Positions 2,904 through 58,745 of a stretch of DNA of 64,000 nt are shown piece after piece (position 1 is the stretch's first letter; each line of letters starts with the position of its first letter). The notes beneath the pieces were generated by a model that saw only the letters and a list, made by a program, of their open reading frames with translations, was not told the origin of the DNA and did not search any database. The DNA is taken from contig OZ176054.1 of NCBI GenBank assembly GCA_964247055.1, positions 2,294,001 to 2,358,000 on the forward strand. Reading direction: 5' to 3'. A program made the translations under genes and the position numbers. The stretch is from Paragordius varius (lineage: Eukaryota > Animalia > Nematomorpha).

Positions 2904-5901
2904 ATGTTTATATACTTGTAAAACAACTTTTAAACGTAAAAAAAGCCACACACATTCAAAAAAAATAACAATATTAATTTCTATGAATTATTGTAATTTT
3001 CAGGATTTACTGTAAATACCCTTTTAGCCATTTCAAGGTCTATAATAATCCTCTTTACAAAATTTGGTTCTGTATCAGTAATGTTCACTAATTTAGGTCA
3101 AAAACATTTTTTGTCCCAAAAGCCATGCACCATATTATACCGACAAATATTGCTTGGATCTTTGTATACGCAGATAATTACTTTAAATAAGTACATCAAA
3201 TATATTAAATCAATATTTCAGAACCATGAAAAAAACGTTTGTGCGATTTTATGAGATTCATCAATAAATGCCCTTTGCCTTTTGGAAATTTATATGTTTA
3301 ACGTTTTCTTAGCCTTTTCACCATGCTTCAAAAATATTTTAATATTCAAACATTTTTGCCTCCGGATTTTTTGAATCGCCAATATAACAGGTGAATAAAT
3401 TTAAATTATGGTTTTAATAAAAATAATTGACCTTGAAATAATTTAAAATTTCATATTCAGAAAATTTCGATGTTTGTTGTTAAAATCATCTGTTTACAGT
3501 CAATGAAACTCTCTAAATTGGGACGCTAGAAGTTAGAAAACTGTAAATACCACATTTTTAATAAAACATAGTTTGATAATTGAATATTATTAACCAAAAC
3601 AATTTTAATATCAGTAGTTTATTTACAAGTTTAAGCTCTGAGAAACTATTCCAAAATGTAATCATCTACAAAAAAGGTAAATAAGTGGTTAGTCAAAAAA
3701 AATTGATAATTGCATACACACAACCCTAAAATATTCATAAACCAATTAACTGTAAACGAATTATATTTCGGGCATTCCTGTATGTGCCCTGTTACAGCCT
3801 TTCTTATTGGTTGTTAGATGCCATTTACACTTTTACTTTCACTTTTTTATGGATATGTGATGTTTCTTGTCTTAGAGCTTTTTAACTATTATTAAAATTT
3901 AATTAATGCATTTTATTAGCCACTTTATTTAGATTATTTAGAAAATCCGAAAAAAGGGGCGGCAAAAAGTTTCATGTAATTAGTTTACATTTGTTTTTTT
4001 CCACAAAAATATTTATTTGTGCGACCCCCCCCCCCACCTAAAGGCCATAAAATAGATCATAAATTGGCCCATGATCATTGAGGCTATTTTACATATATTC
4101 GGTATCGCTTTGCGATACAAAACTGATCCCAAAGAAAAAATTGCAAAAAAATGAAAATTATTTAACCGTTTTTATCAAAAAATGAGCAAATTAGTCAAAA
4201 AATCTCCTGAGAGTAATAAAATTTGATTTACTCATAATTTAGTGCCTTTAGATAAAACCATTTGTCAGCCTAAAAAAGTTTCTTGGATGATATATGATTT
4301 AAAAAAAACCTTAATGAAATTTTTATATAAACTAACTGTTATTATTTAAAAATCTGATTAATTTGTATAAATAGATGCTAATTTCACAACTCTTATTCAT
4401 GTATTAACTATTAATTTTGCTAAGTTTTTACCACTTAGATTCATAGGAAAAAATTTATAACAATTGTTAAAAAGCAGCTAATGCTGAAAATCAGTAATCT
4501 TGCTTTATTTTCCTTTTATGTCCACGTGATATCATTTTTTTCAAATTATTATTTAAAAAAATATTGGATCCGAAATTTTGAGATTTTGATACGCCTAACT
4601 ATGATATTTTGTTTAAATTCAAAACCAATATCTTGTAAAATATCATGTTTTCAAAATGCTAAGATAATGCATAGTAGATTAATTTAAACTGAACGCTTTA
4701 TCTTACTTTTTAACCTAACTCATTTTATAAATAAGCAGAGAAAAACTCGATTATTATTTTAAATATTTAATTTAATTTCCAATAATTCTACTTTGTTTTT
4801 TTGTCACTTTTTTACCTTCATAAAATAAATATTATATTCATGGATATTAAAAACACTTTTATTCTGTCTAATAAGGCAAAAATTTAGCAATTTGAGTATT
4901 TCAATCTTTCATCATTTAAATTTAATTTCGTTTAAAAAGCAGTATCAAATAAACTTCAGTTTCATAAAAATTACGAGTTGTTTGTCACATAAAAATTCCA
5001 ATCAGATTTAAAACCGGTTCTGGTTCCCCAACCACATATTTGAACCGAAAGAGTTTTAGTTTTAACTAATTAGAAGTTAATCTTACACTACATTACTGAG
5101 TGTTTTTTGTAATAATTTTTAACAACATCTAAAAATACTAGAGTTAATGGACAAATACTCGTCTTTACAGAACTGCGCAACTTTTACAGAGACTCTATTG
5201 ACCCCCCCATCAAATTTCACAATGATAATTTATATTATTTTTGGTTCAAAATCTAAAATGTTTGTTGAAAAGCTGGAGACACAACTTGATTTGTTTTGGT
5301 AAAAGTGGAAGCCCTACTTAAGTGTCAGACAATGGGCATGTACGTTCTAGAATTGAGGTATATGTTAAATTGTCAAAACTAAACTATATACCTGGTAACT
5401 AATGAATATATTTTGAAGTGGGTTTTTTTTAAATATTTTTGATAATATAAAGAATATTTATTTATATGATTACAATCGTATTAAGTTTTGCAAAAAACCT
5501 CTTAACAATGTCGCCTTTTCCCCTTTGAACTAGGTATAAAATGAAAAACCTCCTATTTACCAATATAAAAATATTAAAATTATATTTAAACTTTAAATTC
5601 AAATGCATATTTGTAAAAATAAACTTCCTAATTTGTACATAAATGTATGACAATTTTACCGTAGAAATTATTTAATCATATCAATACTATTACAAACTGT
5701 TTGTAAATCAGGAACAAATATTAATGTATTATTATCATTTATTTATTAAAAAAGCGTTTGTGTAATAATGTATTGATCAAAATATTGAATAACCCATACT
5801 CCGAAATTGCATTAAAAAAGTAATTGATGCATTTATAATTTTAATAAAAAAATTTGCTTGCATTATATATAGCAAATATATATATCAAATAATTTATAGT
5901 T

Positions 5902-7173
5902 TCATAATTTGTCAGCTGCCACGTTTAATTTGGCCCAAAATTCATTTTCTGGCCCTGAATAGAGGCTTAAGAATCCCTTAGTATTGACCAACTTTAAAGC
6001 AATTTTGTCCATATCATAAAACATTAGGATTATGGAATCTGCCGACTCGGGTACATAAAAGTTAGACAAGAGTTGCGAAATAAAAAAGGTTACGTATGTT
6101 TTATCTGATACATTAATTAGCGTAATAGGTACATTGTTATCAGTATTTTTATCATTTGGATTGTTTGAGCGAGATTTTGTTCCATAAAATCCGCTTGAAT
6201 TAGGCTCAGTCCTAAGGCGTTTGTTTGGTGTCAATGGTACAAAATCGTAATTTTGGCTATGGACAGTCTTCTCATTATTATAATGGCTCATATCAGTTTT
6301 GTAAGCGTAAGAAGATTTTGTTTCAAGTGTAACTTTTTCAGCTTTTATCTTAGCCTCAATGCTATTCGAAATGGTTTTAAGTTGGTTGATGAAGTACTTT
6401 TTAGCAGTATAATCTTGTTGAAGTGCTTTGTATTCTACATTATACAACAGCCAAGTAAAATTGTGTATTAGGTTTAGAATATCTGTCATATTATATGGGT
6501 AAGGGATTTTTTGTTTGTTTTGCAACATATTCTCAACGCATTTTGACGTTTGTGGTATATGAATTTTTGCATTTATAGTCTTATATGAAACGAAATATTT
6601 GTTAAAAACATTCGTATCAAGTTTAGATATTGGACGATTTCTGGATCTAATACTCGTTTCGAGTTGACTTAAATGGTTTGACATAAATTTTCTGCTGTCA
6701 TTTTTAATAACTGAAGATTCTAAGCTTTTCTCTGTTTTCTTATCATTGTTTGGCATCATACTATTATTAAATTCATTTTTATCCATAGGCAGGTATATGT
6801 TCTTATAAGGGACTCCGGTGTACCCATTTAAAAAATAGTTTATCGATTCCTTCACTAAATTAGATGATTCACTTTTATCTAATTTCGCCTTAAAAATAAC
6901 GCTTTCTGGTCGTCGAGTTAGGTTGGCATTTATAACTTTAGATAAATAATTGTGTAATGATTGTCCAATAGCATAACTTAACTCTTTTCCTTGGGTCGAG
7001 ATAGTGGGATTTTTCTGTTTATTCAAATTAAAATACATCCCCGCTTTGTTAAAAGTGCATGATACATTTTCAATCGATGGTACATTTAAAATCATGACTT
7101 TTCTAACATTAGTCATAGGTATTTCATCTAGATGTAGAAAACATTGATATAATAGTGAAATTAATTTAATCAT
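5902..7173 (-). CDS. Intronless hypothetical protein, 423 aa, no recognised family
   Basis: A 1272-bp ATG-to-stop ORF in sequence where chance ORFs rarely exceed ~100 codons. It contains TPNKRLR (CDK-site/NLS-like) and a predicted helical segment (LQQDYTAKKYFINQLKTISNSIEAKIKAEK). Confidence 0.75.
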   Translation of the reverse strand: MIKLISLLYQCFLHLDEIPMTNVRKVMILNVPSIENVSCTFNKAGMYFNLNKQKNPTISTQGKELSYAIGQSLHNYLSKVINANLTRRPESVIFKAKLDKSESSNLVKESINYFLNGYTGVPYKNIYLPMDKNEFNNSMMPNNDKKTEKSLESSVIKNDSRKFMSNHLSQLETSIRSRNRPISKLDTNVFNKYFVSYKTINAKIHIPQTSKCVENMLQNKQKIPYPYNMTDILNLIHNFTWLLYNVEYKALQQDYTAKKYFINQLKTISNSIEAKIKAEKVTLETKSSYAYKTDMSHYNNEKTVHSQNYDFVPLTPNKRLRTEPNSSGFYGTKSRSNNPNDKNTDNNVPITLINVSDKTYVTFFISQLLSNFYVPESADSIILMFYDMDKIALKLVNTKGFLSLYSGPENEFWAKLNVAADKL

Positions 7174-50693: not shown

Positions 50694-53600
50694 ATGCGCA
50701 GTGCATTTGAACAATATCTCCAGATGTTTTACGCATGTGTCTTAAGTTTTCTGGTAGGAATTTGGAAATTTGGCATAACTACAGTTAATGGCATGGAAAA
50801 TGGATTAGCATTGACACCACCAATGGGTTGGATGTCATGGCAACGTTACCGCTGTAATACAGACTGTGCTCTTCATCAGAATGATTGTTTAAAGTTTTTT
50901 TATAATATTATATTCAGTGAAAATTTGATAATGGATACTGCAGATGCTTTTGTTAGACTGGGTTTAAAAAAAGCAGGCTACACTTATATAATTATTGATG
51001 ACTGTTGGGCCGAAAATAACAGAGATGAGAACGGTGAACTGCAACCTGATGCAAAGCGTTTTCCACATGGAATCAAATATTTAGCTGATTATGTAAAATC
51101 ATAAATTTTATTATATATTTGATTTTTAGTCGAATTCATAAAAAACTGCTTTCGTTTTTTTAACGCATGAAGGATTGTTAACGGAATCATTGTTGTAAAA
51201 CCGGGTTAAAATTTTTTTCCCAATTTTTATTACTAATTCTGTTATTTTTTAAATAAAAGGCATATTAAAATACAATAAGTTTTTGTCGGTTATATCCATG
51301 TGTCCAAATGAAATATCTGTAAAAATTAGAACCGAAACAACAACCAAAACTATTTTAAGCAACAATATTTGGAATGGGGCAAATATATAAACCGTTTTTT
51401 AAAAACTATTCAAAACCGGAATTGAAACCGTAACGGCGGGATATAAAAAGAAATCCCGTTCTATTTAGATAAAAATATTTAGCAAAGAGACTCTAAATAT
51501 TTATAGTTTTTAATTGAATATACAGTTACATAAACTCGGTCTTAAGCTTGGAATTTACGCTGATTTTGGTACTTTTACTTGTCAACATTACCCAGGATCC
51601 GAATTTTATATAAAAACGGATGCTCAAACATTTGCTCGTTGGGATGTCGATTACGTTAAAATGGATGGCTGTTTCGCCGACCCTGGTCAAATGAATGATG
51701 GTAACAAATTTCGGTTTTTTATATTCATTCTTCAGGAATTTATTGTTTAAATTCCTTCATAAGACAGCCACATCAAATTTATTAAATACGCACACCTTTA
51801 AACCAATTAATATATGATTTTTATGGATATTTCCTCCAATTTCTTAATAACGTTTTAGTTTTATGGTAAAAATTGTTGAGATTTGGGTTATAATGAAAAG
51901 GGGAGTTTATTTTACTATACAACGTGTTTTTTTCTTTATAAAAGGTTACCCAGAGTTTTCCAAATGGCTAAACAAAACGGGGCGATCTATGATATTCTCT
52001 TGTAGTTGGCCTGATTATCAGAGTGATACTCAGCGGGTAACATTTTTTTATTTGATACATTTATAGTGTATATATAAAATATAATGGTGAAAATAAATAT
52101 AATTAACCATTTTTCCGAAACCAATAAACTTTTTTTAAATTTTATCACTTTTTATTATTATCGGGGGAAAAAATTTTACCAGTGATTATTTATTTTATGT
52201 TATGTTGATCATTAAATTTATTAAATATAATTATTATTATCCAATTCGATTCATATTTCCTCAAATATTAAACTTTAAACAAAATATATTATATAATATA
52301 GGCTAATTATACGTACATCTCAGAATTTTGTAATTTATGGCGTAATTACGATGACATCCAGGATTCGTGGGAAAGTGTACGTGCCATAATAAAATTTTAT
52401 GGAGATAAACAGACGGAATTAATAAACGCTGCGGGCCCAGGGCATTGGAATGATCCTGATATGGTTTTTTTTAGATTTAATTGGATTTTATTTGACACAA
52501 AAAATGGTTGAGATAAGAGGAATAGATTTAATAAATGGGATAATTGTCAAAAAGAAGGTTTTTTGATTTTAAAATATAAATGAGTGGAGTGAATAAAAAA
52601 AGAAACCCTTTAAGTGTTTCCTATGCACACTTTTTCAAATAAAGGGTTTCCTCATAATTCACATAAAAAACACATCTGATTAATACTCGAGTTTCCTTAA
52701 ACCATGCCTAAAACCGATTTAAGTATGCCTAAAGAAAAATTGATAGCTCTTCTAGTAAAGTAACTTATAAATATTTAATATTTTTATTATCCCTTAGTTT
52801 TAAACAAATCTATGGTGCCGTATATTGTAATTTAAAAAAAAGCCTATAAAATCTCCAAAATGATCTTTTGACAGAAACAAAGAAATATTACAATATAAAT
52901 TAGATTAGAAAGGCTATCGATAATATGAAAAGTTCGATAAAAAAAATATGATTTGAATATTACAACAGGGAACGTGGTTATTAAAGATAAGATCGAATCG
53001 GAGGAGATTTTCCTAAATTTATTAAAACAATCGAATCCGCATTTTGCATTTATAGCCGGAGGTGTTTCTGTGGGAGTGCCTCTAAAAGGTATAGATTTGC
53101 TTATATATAGAAACAAATTTAACGCCGTTCTCGCAGCTATCGAGAATAGCTGCCAGTTTTCAAGATACATCTCCATTGTTTGATTTCGAGGGCGATTTGG
53201 ATGATACGTCCAAATATAAGTTATAAATATATAAAATTGAGATGATCTCGATAATAATACCCATGTAGTAGTCAGACGCGAAAGATAAAACGAAGTCAGG
53301 TTTCTTTCGGATGATATATTAAAATTAAATTTTAGATAATTGTAAAAGGATTCAAGGCAGAAGGCAAAAACATCCCCAGGCCTTGGAGGATGAAGGTGAA
53401 TCAACAATTTTCCTATTAAATGAAAAATTGCAAAGATTACTAATGGTGAAGGAGTTGAGTGAAACTTATATCATCCATGATATTTTATATTATGATAATT
53501 TAAATAATAAATAGTTTTAATAATTATTTATGTAATTTCTCTGATTTGATTATATATACAAATTGTTATTTGACAAGAATCACTTAATAGAATTAAAATA

Positions 53601-56600
53601 TATGTAGGTTGCATAACATAATACGAATTGTGAATTGTTAAAAAAATAAAAAATATACGAGTTTGTAAATGGCTTTATACATAGTTATAATAAAAAATTG
53701 CAAAAATTATAATAGTTCATAAGAGGTCATTATCAATCATCGAGCGTAATATTTAATTTCGCCTTTTTATACCTAATCTTTTGGATCTTGAATTCTCTTT
53801 TTCGGTAGGCAAACACTGATCTTTATCTGATAAACCGGTCTCAATATCAGGTTCATCTTCTTCTATTTGGTCATTAAAATGCTTTGATATATTAGTGTAA
53901 AATTGCGCAAGATAATATGACTTTTGATAATTTTGGAAGAGCAATTCGAATTTTATTACCAAGTATGGGAAATCTTTTTTTAATTTGGCCAAATATGCGT
54001 TCAATAACACACCTACTTTTGAGTGAATTGTATTGAACTTCTTTTCATATAGACCAGTTGGATTTCTAAATGATGTTAAAAGTCAGGGGGATATTGCATA
54101 GCCGCTATCTGCAAGCATAGATGCATTAGCTTTAAAGTTTTTAGTAAATTTTCCAAGACTACTGCGTCTGAATATCCTGCTGTCATGTATACTTCCGGGA
54201 GAATTTATATCTTTGTTTATATAAAAGTGGGTGCAATCTATGGCTCTAACTATACCAGGCATCTTATATTGCTTTTGCCATAGGGTTTTTGCTTGAGAAA
54301 TTTCATCCATATTGCTAGGAAATTTGATCCATTCATGTGCTTTTGTCACAAAGGACAATTTAGTGAGTAGTATATCAATAGAAAACAAAGGTATTCTATA
54401 AACGTCCAGGTAGTGATGCCAATGAATATATCACTAGCTTGGATATAAATTCTCCCGGAAGTATGCATGACAGCAGGTTAAGACGCAGTAGTCTTGAAAA
54501 ATTTACTAAAAACGTTAAAGCTAATGCATCTTTGCTTGCAGATAGCGGCTATGCAATATCCCCCTGGCAATTTAGAAATCCAACTGGTCTATATGAAAAG
54601 AAGTTTAATACAATTCACTCAAAAGTAGGTGCGTTATTGAACTATTTGGCCAAATTAAAAAAGGATTTTCCATACTTGGTAATAAATTCGATTTGCTCTT
54701 CCAAAATAATTGCTCAATTTTACACAATATATCAAAGAAAGCATTTTAATGACAATATAGAAGAAGATGAATCTGATATTGAGACCGGTTTATCAGATAA
54801 AGATCAGTGTTTGCCTACCGAAGAGAAGAGAATTCAAGATCCAAAAGATTAGGTATAAAAAGGCGAAATTAAATATTACGCTCGATGATTGATAATGACC
54901 TCTTATGAACCATTATAATTTTTGCAATTTTTTATTTTAACTATGTATAAAGCCATTTCCAAACTCGTATATATTTATTTTTTTAACAATTCACAATTCT
55001 TATTATGTTATGCAACCCACATATATTTTAATTCTATTTAGTGATTCTTGTCAAATAACAATTTGTATATATAATCAATTCAGAGAAATTACATAAATAA
55101 ATATTAAACTATTTATTATTTAAATTATCATAATATAAAATCATGGATGATATAAGTTTCAACTCCTTCACCATTAGTAATCTTTGGAATTTTTTATTTG
55201 ATAGGGAAATTGTTGATTCATTTTCATCCTCCAAGGCCTGGGGATGTTTTTGCCTTCTGCCTTAAATCCTTTTACAATTATCTAAAGTTTATTTTTAATA
55301 TACCATCCGAAAGAAACCTGACTTTGTTTTATCTTTCGCATCTGATTAGTACATGGGGTATTATTATCTCGAGATCATCTGAATTTTATATAGTTATAAC
55401 TTATAATGGACGTATCATCTAAATCGCCCTCGAAATCAAACAATGGAGATGTATCTTGAAAACCGAAAGCTATTCTCGATAGCTGCGAGAACGGCGTTAA
55501 ATTTGTTTCTATATATAAGCAAATCTATACCTTTTAGAGGCACTCCCACAGAAACACCTCCGGGTATAGATGCAAAATGCGGATTCGATATAAATTTAGG
55601 TCCTCCGATTCGGTCTTATCTTTAATAACCACGTTCCCTATTGTAATATTCAAATCATATTTTTTTTTCATATTATCGATAGCCTTTCTAATCTAATCTA
55701 TTATAATATTTCTTTGTTTCTGTCAAAGGATCATTTTGGAGATTTTTATAGGCTTCTTTTTTTAAATTACAATATACGGCACCATAGATTTGTTTAAAAC
55801 TATGGGATAATAAAAATATTAAATATTTATAATTTACTTTACTAGAAGAGCTATCAATTTTCTTTAGGTATACTTATATTGGTTAGGCATGGTTTAAGAA
55901 AACTCGATAGTTAATCAGTTGTGTTTTTTATATGAATTGAAAGGAAACTTTTTCTTTGAAAAAGTCAGCATAGGAAACACTTAAAGGGTTTCCTTTTTTA
56001 TTCACTCCACCCAATGTGTTTTTTGTTATTTGAATTAAAACTGTTTTGGTTTTTTGGTTCCAAGTCAATATTTTTATTTCTGGTTCCTATTTCAACCAAT
56101 TTTCTAGAAAAAACGGATTTCGAAAACTTGTTAAATAGTAATCTAGGATGTTTTTTTACATTTTTAGGGATGACCTGTTGTTTCCAATGTAGTTATAATA
56201 ATGCTACCAAAATATAAGCAACTAAAATGTAAAATTTTTATCATGTTTTTCAAATAAAATAAAAAAATTTAATTACCATAAATCATAATGATGATTTGAA
56301 AAATAAGAATTAATTTTACGGATCCACTGTTTAAATATAAAAGCCTAGCGTCTTTGGAAATTTTATTTGACTGCCAAATAAGGCTAACTGCTTTAAATTA
56401 TTCGGCTTTGTTAAATATTTATGTATTACAATATACATGTCTAGTTTTTTTATCTAAAATTTCCAGATAGAATATATAGCAAAGAGCATTATTATTGGCT
56501 AGTATTAGTAAAAAGCGAAAAAATAAGTATTGGCCAATAATAATTCTCTTATCTTTATATGCTATCTGGTAATTAATAAAAAACTGGCAATATATTTTTA

Positions 56601-57088
56601 CTCATACTGTGTTTAAATATCATAATTTTTAAATAATATTTTATATATTTATCTTTTACTAATCGCAGCTAATTATTGGGAATTATGGTTTAAGTACGAC
56701 ACAAGCTCAAACTCAACTGGCTTTTTGGTCCTTACTATCTTCACCTTTGCTTATTTCCACAGACCTTTCCAATCTTGATCCCATTAGCTTGCGGATTATA
56801 ACGGATTCAGAGGCCATTGCTATAAATCAAGATGTTTGGGGTTTCCAAGGTGCTAGGATTCATACGGTATAAAGTTTTTCGATAAAAAATATATATATCT
56901 ATTGCATTTTTCTTGATTGTGTTGATTTATAATTTTTATATTTAGAATAGTTTGTTTGAATATTTATTACATCAAAAAAATATATATTTTATGTTTCCAA
57001 ACAACATAAACATATATCAAAGGATGTGATCCGTAGACACAGAATTGATATATTGAAGTCATTTCTATTTAATTAATTCAGTACATTG

Positions 57089-57123
<35 letters not shown>

Positions 57124-58745
57124 TTATAAATAACAAAAATGTGTTTTTTTTCATTAAATTTCGTATTAGGAAAATACGCCATAAAAACATTCAATCATCA
57201 ATTTTTTTGTTAGGCCGGTAAAATTGAAGTTTGGATGAAACCACTTTCTCATTCACGTTTTACTATACAAACGCAACATATTCAAACTCAAACCCAACAA
57301 ATTCCAATTAATTCATTTTTTTTAAACTCTTTGAATGTCAAAAATAATAATATATATTCTAGTCACCACACCTCTCCTATATTAAACACATTATTTAATG
57401 CAAGGACTAATGTAAGTCGTAAAGCTTTGTTCGATAACATGGCTTTCCTAGTTTATAATATGGGGGATGATGGAAGTCCCACGCCCTATACGTTTCGCCC
57501 TAAAATGTTTGGGTTAACTCAAGCTTCTGGGTATCGAGTTAAAACTATATTTCCATATAATAATCGACAAACGTATTTAATGGAAGATGAAACTCATATC
57601 AACAGTGTAGCTGGAAAAAGCAATAATATCCTAAATAGTAAGTAAAATACAAATTTGGCATAAATGCGAATAGTTTAAAAACATAAAAAGTATAAGACTT
57701 TCAAATTTTTATATCCACAACCAAATATTAATACCTTGTTCATTAAAACATTTATTAGCACCAATCTGAATAAGACAATGAGTTGACACGAAAATAAGTT
57801 TTTGATGGCTTTATATAATTTAACTGGAGAATATGGATCATTTCCAAAAATATTGGTTTAAACCAGGGATATCCAACATAAATGGCTTCGCGGACCGTAT
57901 TTCTGGATCGAAAAATCCGGCTGGGTGCATTTGTAAATTATATGGGCATTAACAAAAATTTTATAAGAATTTATAGACCTATTTACTATATTTATTTTAA
58001 CTTTGCTAGTCCATTGCCAAAATTCGGAAAGATTTTATTTTAAATTTATTGCGAGCCGCAGAAATATTTTGAAGGACCGTATGTTGAACGCCCCTGGTTT
58101 TGTTTAAACTATATATTTTCAATTATTATAAATTGATTTTTCCCACCTTTCATTAGATAATCTTAAAATTGAATTGAACTTTAATTTTTATGATAGATGT
58201 TATATGAAATGTAAAATAATTATAATTTATAATCTACAAATTCTATTGCCGAAATATTACATTTTTGATATAATATATTCGTTTGTGAATATAATGAAAA
58301 TTCCCTAGTGTTCAATTATATGCAATGAATGTATATCTGCCAACATTTTTGTGAATTTATCATTCATCATGGAAGAAAATGACCTTTAATATTAAAATAT
58401 TGTTTAGAATGACGTAATAATGTCAAATTTCCATTATTATTTAGATAATTATAAATAATAACATTATTAACTTTTGATAAACTATTTGATTACGGTACTT
58501 TTTTACAACATTGTATACTTCCAATCTTTTGAATGAAACAGAAGGGGTATTCAAGCGTTTGACTTTAGTGTTTGAAATTGCTAAAATTCCAAATTTTAAA
58601 ATATTTTTTCACATTTTTTTTAGATAATTATGGTGAATATGAAAACGAGGACGATTATATAATAATAAAACCCGAAACGAATGTTACCGTATTTGTGCCA
58701 CCTTCTGGAGTAGTTTATCTTCGAATAGAAGCGATTAAAACTTAG
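50694..58745 (+). CDS. NAGA: GH27 alpha-N-acetylgalactosaminidase / alpha-galactosidase, ~515-523 aa; exons 50694-51092, 51526-51700, 51945-52036, 52302-52463, 56669-56866, 57214-57637, 58624-58745
   Basis: Signal-peptide-like N-terminus, NGLALTPPMGW, IIIDDCW, LGIYAD, nucleophile YVKMDGC, SCSWP, acid/base WRNYDDIQDSW, GPGHWNDPDM, AIAINQD, IEVWMKPLS and C-terminal VPPSGVV. All junctions are frame-compatible (1572 nt). Confidence 0.92.
52582..56012. mobile_element. PIF/Harbinger-derived giant palindrome (arms 52582-54211 and 54442-56012; 230-bp spacer) in NAGA intron 4
   Basis: The arms are reverse complements along their length. DDE_4 transposase remnants include WIKFP, AIDCTH, DANEYITSLDINSPGSMHDSR and LADSGY. 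Termini GAGTGGAGTGAAT / ATTCACTCCACCC are both flanked by AAT. Confidence 0.92.
57093..57120. repeat. (TA)n microsatellite in NAGA intron 5
   Basis: About 14 TA units. Confidence 0.95.
57864..58096. mobile_element. hAT-type MITE in NAGA intron 6
   Basis: TIRs CAGGGATATCCAACATA / TATGTTGAACGCCCCTG. GTTTAAAC lies immediately to the left and recurs 5 bp to the right of the element, so the TSD is imperfect or displaced. Confidence 0.6.

Follow-up and report, generated by a model that had tools for sequence, protein, structure and literature searches.

A single-copy head-to-head palindrome of PIF/Harbinger 3' ends in an intron of a NAGA-like gene of Paragordius varius

Mu killer (Muk) of maize belongs to the Mutator superfamily, and production of siRNA and heritable silencing have been shown for it (PMC3440606). 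The composite insertions of maize Ac consist of two inverted, fractured Ac copies that arise by alternative transposition and re-replication, and dsRNA is transcribed from a flanking promoter (bioRxiv 10.1101/2020.01.07.897926). Derivatives of abortive gap repair, such as Ds from Ac, have retained termini and 1–2 bp of microhomology at the junction, and are mostly simple internal deletions keeping both different ends, (Rubin and Levy 1997, cited in PMC13668399). Birth of MITEs by microhomology likewise involves internal rearrangement with microhomology junctions (PMC3814204).

The palindrome described here is located at positions 52582–56012 (3,431 bp, by inverted-repeat search and local alignment) of the window, the whole stretch of 64,000 nucleotides that was analysed from contig OZ176054.1. 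Like Muk it combines a terminal repeat and a partial transposase in an inverted duplication through which a host promoter could read, but it is an animal Harbinger, it is intronic and its 3' part is duplicated, while Muk duplicates the 5' part. With the Ac composite insertions it shares the same end in inverted orientation, fused internal breakpoints and a perfect target-site duplication (TSD), whereas the maize events come with duplications of 0.3–3.2 Mb and a nearby second element, and here the host gene looks intact on both sides. The 1–2 bp junction microhomologies and retained termini are those of gap-repair derivatives, and the rearranged interior is that of nascent MITEs, but one end of the palindrome has been swapped for the inverted other. 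Terminal repeats and a 3-bp TSD are also found in MITEs of the Tourist/mPing type of PIF/Harbinger, but these are short, multi-copy and have a 5' and a 3' end, while the palindrome is 3.4 kb, unique and 3'/3'. The palindrome is real and of an already known kind of transposon by-product; probably it is a dead, non-autonomous same-end derivative of a PIF/Harbinger element of about 2.4 kb, most likely produced by a template-switch duplication of the 3' half.

The palindrome and its host intron

The window has 27% G+C, and putative micro-introns and young Harbinger copies are found in it, features that set it apart from human DNA. The host is an intact-looking NAGA-like gene, and the exons on either side of the palindrome match Melibiase_2. 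The features of the locus are as follows, in window coordinates.

52302–52462, plus strand: exon of the NAGA-like gene before the insertion (...FCNLWRNYDDIQDSW...AGPGHWNDPDM), followed by the donor ATG/GTTTTT at 52463
52463–56668, plus strand: host intron of 4,206 nt, or 772 nt minus the element and one TSD copy
52579–52581: left TSD, AAT, a direct repeat of 56013–56015
52582–52609, plus strand: TIR at the outer end of the left copy, GAGTGGAGTGAAT..., which differs at one position from the family terminus GGGTGGAGTGAAT
52582–54211, minus strand: left arm, the 3' part of Harbinger reversed, reference copy L043 from 6014 down to 4529
about 53753–54211, minus strand: C-terminal part of the transposase in the left arm, matching DDE_Tnp_4
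54212–54351, minus strand: spacer part A, continuing the left copy (WIKFP...AIDCTH), reference 4430 down to 4291
54350–54441, plus strand: spacer part B, where the right copy begins (...DANEYITSL), reference 4434 onward
54442–56012, plus strand: right arm by alignment, the 3' part of the element with the terminus ...ATTCACTCCACCC
56013–56015: right TSD, AAT, read from the sequence
56458–56574: small palindromic MITE, also in the host intron but unrelated to the element, with 47-nt arms and a 23-nt loop
56669–56866, plus strand: exon of the NAGA-like gene after the insertion (LIIGNYGLSTTQAQ...INQDVWGFQGARIH), its end inferred from the next GT

The palindrome begins 119 nt past the donor and stops 656 nt before the acceptor. 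It had been assigned to intron 4 of NAGA, and a NAGA-like intron it is, but the fifth one if a putative micro-intron of 24 nt at 50903–50926 is counted. This micro-intron also opens with GTTTTT, so that the donor, which is present as described, is not unusual within the gene. The NAGA-like exons were searched individually, by reference or in six frames, and the genome gave no six-frame match to Melibiase_2_C. For the small palindromic MITE, a first look found 334 candidates genome-wide at 76–83% identity.

Local alignment pairs the left arm at 52581–54211 with the right arm at 54442–56013, with 1489 matches, 70 mismatches and 28 indels (up to 13 bp, totalling 85 bases), which corresponds to an identity of 95.5% when gaps are excluded and 90.6% when they are included. 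The 230-bp spacer (54212–54441) contains a minus-strand ORF with ...WIKFP...AIDCTH and a plus-strand reading, DANEYITSLDINSPGS. Each arm derives from the 3' part of a single PIF/Harbinger family, and the 5' end of the element is absent, a 5'-end probe matching only the terminal repeat of about 32 bp. The preliminary description, which had two 5'-truncated copies with the same end placed head-to-head, arms of about 1.6 kb with some 90% identity, a 230-bp spacer made of two transposase pieces, DANEYITSL deleted from the left copy and AAT at both termini, agrees with the alignment, the reference mapping and the ORFs throughout.

Membership in the superfamily is given by the transposase, the termini and the TSD. 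DDE_Tnp_4 (PF13359) matches fragments at the inner ends of both copies with E=1.9e-6 and 1.6e-4, and the closest fuller copy, used as reference, with E=1.3e-34 and 2.3e-22. The family terminus, GGGTGGAGTGAATAAAAAAAAGGAAAC, is about 28 bp long and common to both ends of the element. A direct AAT repeat bounds the palindrome, and perfect 3-bp TSDs (TAT, TTT, TAC, ATA, AAA and AAT) flank all nine of the nine related 1.13-kb MITE-like copies; at the local base composition a 3-bp match of the flanks has a probability of about 0.028 by chance. About 50 such MITE-like copies belong to the family.

Autonomous PIF/Harbinger copies carry a second gene, which is Myb/SANT/MADF-like. The nine ORFs of the arms outside the transposase gave no Pfam match, and in copies this degraded, with frames perhaps interrupted by micro-introns, a second gene could be hidden from such a search. 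An exact look-up of five element ORFs and one host exon in a protein collection likewise gave no match.

Junctions, arm relationship and origin

Relative to reference L043 the left copy runs in reverse from 6014 to 4529 and then from 4430 to 4291, and the right copy from 4434 to 6014. Junction J1 (54211/54212), where spacer part A meets the left arm, spans the 99-bp deletion that has removed DANEYITSL and has 1 bp of microhomology, and the central junction J2 (54350/54351) has 2 bp, AA. On the reference the two breakpoints are only 3 bp apart, a proximity that by our own arithmetic has a chance of about 0.4% for random breakpoints, although the copy used as breakpoint reference (C5a) is itself rearranged, with TTT and CAC as flanks and no TSD. 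Because the deletion begins 3 bp from a junction with 2-bp microhomology, we propose a template-switch or fold-back repair event. A search of the 110-Mb assembly found J1 and J2 at no other locus.

A tree of the family places the two arms as sisters (bootstrap 100%), on branches of 0.0252 and 0.0251, so that they are equally diverged by about 2.5% each, and 13 derived sites are restricted to them; one old event therefore duplicated a single source copy. The only other head-to-head copy of the same family is located on contig C1, with breakpoints at 4214/4818 and TAA flanks, and its arms group together, apart from those in the NAGA-like intron. Descent of the two palindromes from one mobile ancestor was considered and rejected, as the two arms of each palindrome pair with one another in the tree, and no sites unite left with left or right with right arms across the two.

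In the sequence of events that we favour, the 3' half of one source element would have been copied twice in opposite orientations in a single event, with loss of the 5' end. The process was most likely repair or replication synthesis with a template switch, in which synthesis would proceed inward from the 3' terminus, halt at a discontinuity near reference 4431–4433 and be rejoined via microhomologies of 1–2 bp. Alternatively, the nascent strand may have folded back, the base of the hairpin being trimmed later. In the reading that we prefer, an ordinary element would have been inserted into the intron and then converted in place via its identical terminal repeats of 28 bp, or else the palindrome might have been integrated once, ready-made. 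Both arms would afterwards have decayed equally and apparently neutrally, leaving passenger DNA in the intron. Fold-back running into the flank was also considered and rejected, since the flanking 3-mers are direct AAT and not inverted ATT as expected. The unit is bounded exactly by termini of the transposase type and by a direct 3-bp AAT, and for this reason we take the ends to have been placed by transposase. In-place conversion, one transposition of the palindrome and a product of alternative transposition and re-replication like the Ac composites fit the data alike.

That the palindrome arose elsewhere and moved into the intron as a unit, mobilized by transposase acting on a pair of identical 3' ends, is the less probable course, but the exact transposon termini and the direct TSD are what it predicts. 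Normal elements of the family carry the same terminal repeat of about 28 bp and subterminal words of the GGAAAC type at both ends, and another Harbinger family of this genome, whose transposase is only about 45% identical to that of the palindrome's family, has identical inverted ends of about 572 bp at 97–100% identity at 15 or more loci, so that having long arms of the same end is no bar to mobility in this genome. This family has been amplified, whereas the palindrome, with arms of 1.6 kb, has single-copy junctions in the assembly; no donor site was found, the C1 copy has other breakpoints and its own sister arms, and an in-place conversion of a normal insertion predicts the TSD equally well. 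One transposition of the palindrome as a unit may have taken place, but the proposal that it is a proliferating giant MITE with two same ends is not supported: it has the termini and TSD of a mobile MITE, but multiple copies with the same internal structure were not found in the assembly. Two truncated insertions made independently side by side, or an element nested in another, would have a parallel in the adjacent and nested Harbinger copies that do occur, as in the cluster on contig C5 at 4.147–4.156 Mb. Truncation of the 5' end is however not a behaviour of cut-and-paste insertion, the outer flanks make up one matching TSD, there is neither filler nor an internal TSD at the centre, and neither arm has a closer relative than the other, all of which makes this origin extremely improbable. 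Almost as improbable is an assembly artefact from a fold-back or chimeric long read, palindromes being a recognized class of error in long-read assemblies, since the 70 substitutions and 28 indels with equal branches are unlike error-laden duplicate reads, the palindrome ends exactly at transposon termini with a TSD, and the unique flanks hold consecutive in-frame exons of one gene.

Such inverted duplicates are common in this genome. Fragments on opposite strands within 3.5 kb of each other are found at 11 of the 59 DDE transposase loci of the genome, and four of the 11 were verified as DNA palindromes, suggesting that members of the Harbinger superfamily here often undergo template switching or same-end events.

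Predicted hairpin RNA and its possible meaning

Since the palindrome lies in an intron and the gene looks intact, transcription is likely to read through it from the host promoter. The fold predicted for the intron RNA has -2492 kcal/mol and 1501 arm-to-arm pairs, the outermost between 52582 and 56012, so that the pre-mRNA is predicted to form an imperfect hairpin of about 1.5 kb that loops out the insertion; the RNA stem of about 1.6 kb suggested in the preliminary description is thus physically plausible by folding. Such a stem, it was suggested there, might also undergo ADAR editing or draw the donor towards the acceptor. A six-frame search of the genome gave no match to A_deamin, the deaminase domain of the ADAR type.

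That such a hairpin is kept as a source of silencing, in the manner of Muk, with dsRNA from the NAGA-like promoter being diced to siRNAs against this Harbinger family, seems to us improbable. Inverted partial transposase with a terminal repeat and the placement relative to the promoter of a flanking gene are common to the palindrome, Muk and the Ac composite insertions, and 26 stretches of at least 21 bp, up to 96 bp long, are perfectly paired in the predicted duplex. The palindrome shares perfect 21-mers at 204–660 positions with other copies of the family and at 16–27 positions with the young MITE-like ones, and the genome has one Dicer_dimer locus and two genes with Piwi domains. Against this, the divergence of 2.5% per arm together with the 28 indels is the neutral expectation, with no sign of maintained complementarity, all larger copies of the family that were examined are broken, and intronic hairpins usually leave with the lariat. 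A joint action of the Harbinger palindromes, several of which are intronic, as hairpin-RNA silencers of Harbinger families driven by host promoters is judged equally improbable; if true, they would play in an animal the part that Mu killer plays in maize, in a lineage for which only two Argonaute-family genes were detected.

The locus documents cleanly how a cut-and-paste transposon can become a long palindrome. Because another family has apparently been amplified with long identical ends, same-end events of this kind can seed new mobile lineages, and if the intronic hairpin should give rise to small RNAs, the palindrome would be a natural trigger by which a housekeeping gene drives the silencing of transposons.

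Architecture of the palindrome

An inverted-repeat search returned co-linear inverted matches forming a chain over window 52581–56013, and local alignment of the left half with the reverse-complemented right half divides it as follows.

52581–54211, left arm
54212–54441, spacer (230 bp)
54442–56013, right arm

Arm against arm there are 1489 matches, 70 mismatches and 28 indels (85 bases in total), an identity of 95.5% in aligned columns and 90.6% with gaps counted, so that the coordinates, the arm and spacer lengths and the "about 90%" identity of the preliminary description are correct. Of the mismatches, 40 are transitions and 30 are transversions, without a one-sided bias. The window, G000:C5:2294001–2358000, has a G+C content of about 27%, and the assembly has 110.6 Mb in 44 contigs.

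ORFs at both inner ends of the arms match Pfam DDE_Tnp_4, and a second (Myb-like) gene was not detected in a Pfam scan of the ORFs in the arms. Searched in six frames with DDE_Tnp_4, the genome gave 89 matches, the top one (C5:4147400–4147849) belonging to the DNA family of the arms. As reference we used the copy at locus L043 on contig C5, where the element spans about 3638–6016 with the transposase ORF from 4071. The left copy is reference 6014..4529 reversed and then 4430..4291, with a 99-bp deletion at window 54211/54212 (junction J1), and the right copy is reference 4434..6014 from window 54350, the two copies adjoining at window 54350/54351 (junction J2). The minus strand retains ...HEWIKFP...AIDCTH and the plus strand ...DANEYITSLDINSPGS, which is the stretch deleted in the left copy; the mapping thus bears out that two pieces of transposase are split between the strands, one of them missing from the other copy. 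A probe from the 5' end of the reference (L043 3634–4075) matches the palindrome only in the terminal repeat of about 32 bp and a few short subterminal words, so each arm is a 3' end and no 5' end is present, in agreement with the proposal of two 5'-truncated copies of the same Harbinger end.

In the region G000:C5:4147290–4155547 (L043 and L047) at least four partial copies of the family lie clustered, including a tail-to-tail pair with the 3' termini face to face across 232 bp, and the fullest of these copies lacks a matching target-site duplication (TTT vs CAC). The larger copies of the family are all broken among those examined.

The host gene

Six-frame matches to Melibiase_2 place the palindrome in a NAGA-like gene.

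50814–51107, Melibiase_2 match
51523–51708, Melibiase_2 match
51935–52051, Melibiase_2 match
52299–52469, Melibiase_2 match
56666–56833, Melibiase_2 match beyond the palindrome

The host intron has its donor ATG/GTTTTT at 52463 and its acceptor ...CAG/ at 56668, and measures 4,206 nt, or 772 nt minus the element; translation across it reads ...AGPGHWNDPDM and then LIIGNYGL.... With the exons examined singly, not as a spliced protein, the gene looks intact and the downstream exons remain open. It contains KMDGCF and YDDIQDSW, which we take from the human enzymes to carry the catalytic aspartates, and a CSWP motif that is presumably, by the same comparison, of the NAGA type. Two paralogues are found elsewhere in the genome. 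The first coding exon holds a putative 24-nt GT..AG micro-intron (50903–50926), which takes out nine residues presumably absent from the human enzyme. It starts with GTTTTT, as does the 4.2-kb palindrome-bearing intron, and such a donor is therefore unexceptional within this gene. The palindrome does lie inside a NAGA-like intron, as first described, but the number given, intron 4, becomes intron 5 if the putative micro-intron is counted.

The host intron also contains a small palindromic MITE (56458–56574, 47-nt arms and a 23-nt loop) of an abundant family (334 first-look candidates, 76–83% identical), and the next intron a (TA)n microsatellite (57098–57130).

Origin of the arms, junctions and termini

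Aligned alongside four other family copies, the two arms show 95.0% identity to each other and no more than 93.7% to any other copy. Over the 1,024 columns common to the six sequences, 13 derived sites are common only to the two arms, and none unites the left arm with the left arm of a second head-to-head copy on contig C1, or right with right. In the maximum-likelihood tree the arms pair as sisters (100% bootstrap) on branches of 0.0252 and 0.0251, indicating one source sequence and equal divergence since. Neutral decay following one duplication would predict such equal divergence, which together with the single source argues against two independent insertions having given the two arms as well as against an artefact of assembly. 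The C1 palindrome (L044 4720–9772, G000:C1:8198719–8203771) has different breakpoints, reference 4214 being joined to 4818 with 0–1 bp of microhomology. Its arms, one of which holds a 1.9-kb insertion, pair with each other in the tree with 70% support. The flanks are probably TAA/TAA, although a C-to-T change or 1-bp loss at the right terminus makes the flank ambiguous. Judged from these sequences it records a separate event of comparable age.

At J2, a 2-bp AA overlap connects ...GTCACAA (the reverse of reference 4291) with AAAGGACAAT (reference 4434), and the overlap at J1 is 1 bp. The deletion in the left copy begins after reference 4430, the right copy itself at 4434, so that only 2–3 reference bases (ACC) are found in neither copy. 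By our own arithmetic two random breakpoints would fall that near within about 1.7 kb with a chance of about 0.4%, which indicates that J1 and J2 are mechanistically linked. Both may have arisen by serial template switching at a single discontinuity in the template, near reference 4431–4433: synthesis from the 3' end would halt at 4434 and change strand to 4291, return to the same discontinuity at 4430, and switch again to 4529, copying outward to the terminus. Alternatively, the nascent strand may have folded back and primed at 4434, leaving a 140-nt loop, with later trimming in which one arm would lose 99 bp precisely at the loop-stem junction. Both schemes would fit the junctions.

The terminal 430 bp are common to about 50 loci in the genome. 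All nine examined are elements of 1.13–1.25 kb with distinct 5' and 3' ends (median pairwise identity 97.9%), starting with GGGTGGAGTGAAT and ending with ATTCACTCCACCC, and each is flanked by a perfect 3-bp duplication, A/T-rich but varying in sequence (TAT, TTT, TAC, ATA, AAA or AAT). The palindrome starts with GAGTGGAGTGAAT at 52582 and ends with ...CACTCCACCC at 56012. AAT borders it on both sides, as had been noted, and is a direct repeat with a chance probability of 0.028 for a 3-bp match, indicating that both termini were set into the site transposase-fashion. A fold-back simply running out into the flank is excluded, the repeat being direct AAT...AAT and not inverted ATT...AAT.

The precise return to the left flank could be explained by the identity of about 28 bp between the two terminal repeats, which would amount to in-place conversion of an ordinary insertion already bearing the AAT duplication. 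A same-end product of alternative transposition and re-replication, like the maize Ac composite insertions (bioRxiv 10.1101/2020.01.07.897926), is also possible by analogy. The preliminary description had the unit moving as a giant two-same-end MITE, but amplification is unsupported: a query spanning J1 and J2 (window 54170–54410) has no full-length match in the genome beyond its own locus, all others breaking at J1 or J2. That the palindrome, once formed, moved a single time as a unit is rather unlikely. Long identical ends are nonetheless no bar to mobility in this genome. A second Harbinger family, with about 45% transposase identity to the first, carries the same approximately 572 bp inverted at no fewer than 15 loci with 97–100% identity, and its copy at C6:3.943 Mb (G000:C6:3941528–3947801, L050/L051) has 1,448-bp arms of 98.9% identity around a 450-bp spacer, the outer ends passing into a TAAGACGG/TAAGATAG short-repeat tract.

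Predicted RNA consequences and related duplicates

The predicted fold of the intron (-2492 kcal/mol) has 1501 arm-to-arm pairs, the outermost being 52582–56012, with 119 nt from donor to stem and 656 nt from stem to acceptor. The predicted duplex contains 26 perfect runs of at least 21 bp, the longest 96 bp, and has perfect 21-mers in common with other family copies. Any consequences of the hairpin for RNA are inferred from this model, and a role in which the palindrome would be processed or edited as dsRNA, or aid splicing, is unsupported. The equal, indel-rich decay of the arm sequences carries no sign of selection to keep them complementary. Six-frame searching of the genome found one Dicer_dimer locus and two Piwi-domain genes and no A_deamin (ADAR/ADAT) match. 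A reduced complement of RNA-silencing and editing genes could explain this, as could limited sensitivity where exons are split.

The 89 DDE_Tnp_4 matches chain into 59 loci, 11 of which have opposite-strand transposase fragments within 3.5 kb (eight divergent, like the palindrome, and three convergent). The four inspected are all DNA palindromes, with arm identities of 76.7%–99.2%, and are of different ages.

L033, arms of 1186+ bp, 99.2% identity
L036, arms of 369 bp, 93.5% identity
L037, arms of 299 bp, 95.0% identity
L039, arms of 911 bp, 76.7% identity

Harbinger elements in this genome thus seem to have undergone inverted duplication repeatedly. Among the closest known systems are the maize Ac composite insertions and Mu killer (PMC3440606), a maize inverted duplicate of a transposon end. 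The observation is confirmed and the structural interpretation first offered is right. The palindrome is a further example of a known transposon by-product, with an unusually legible junction, and the genome is rich in products of this kind.
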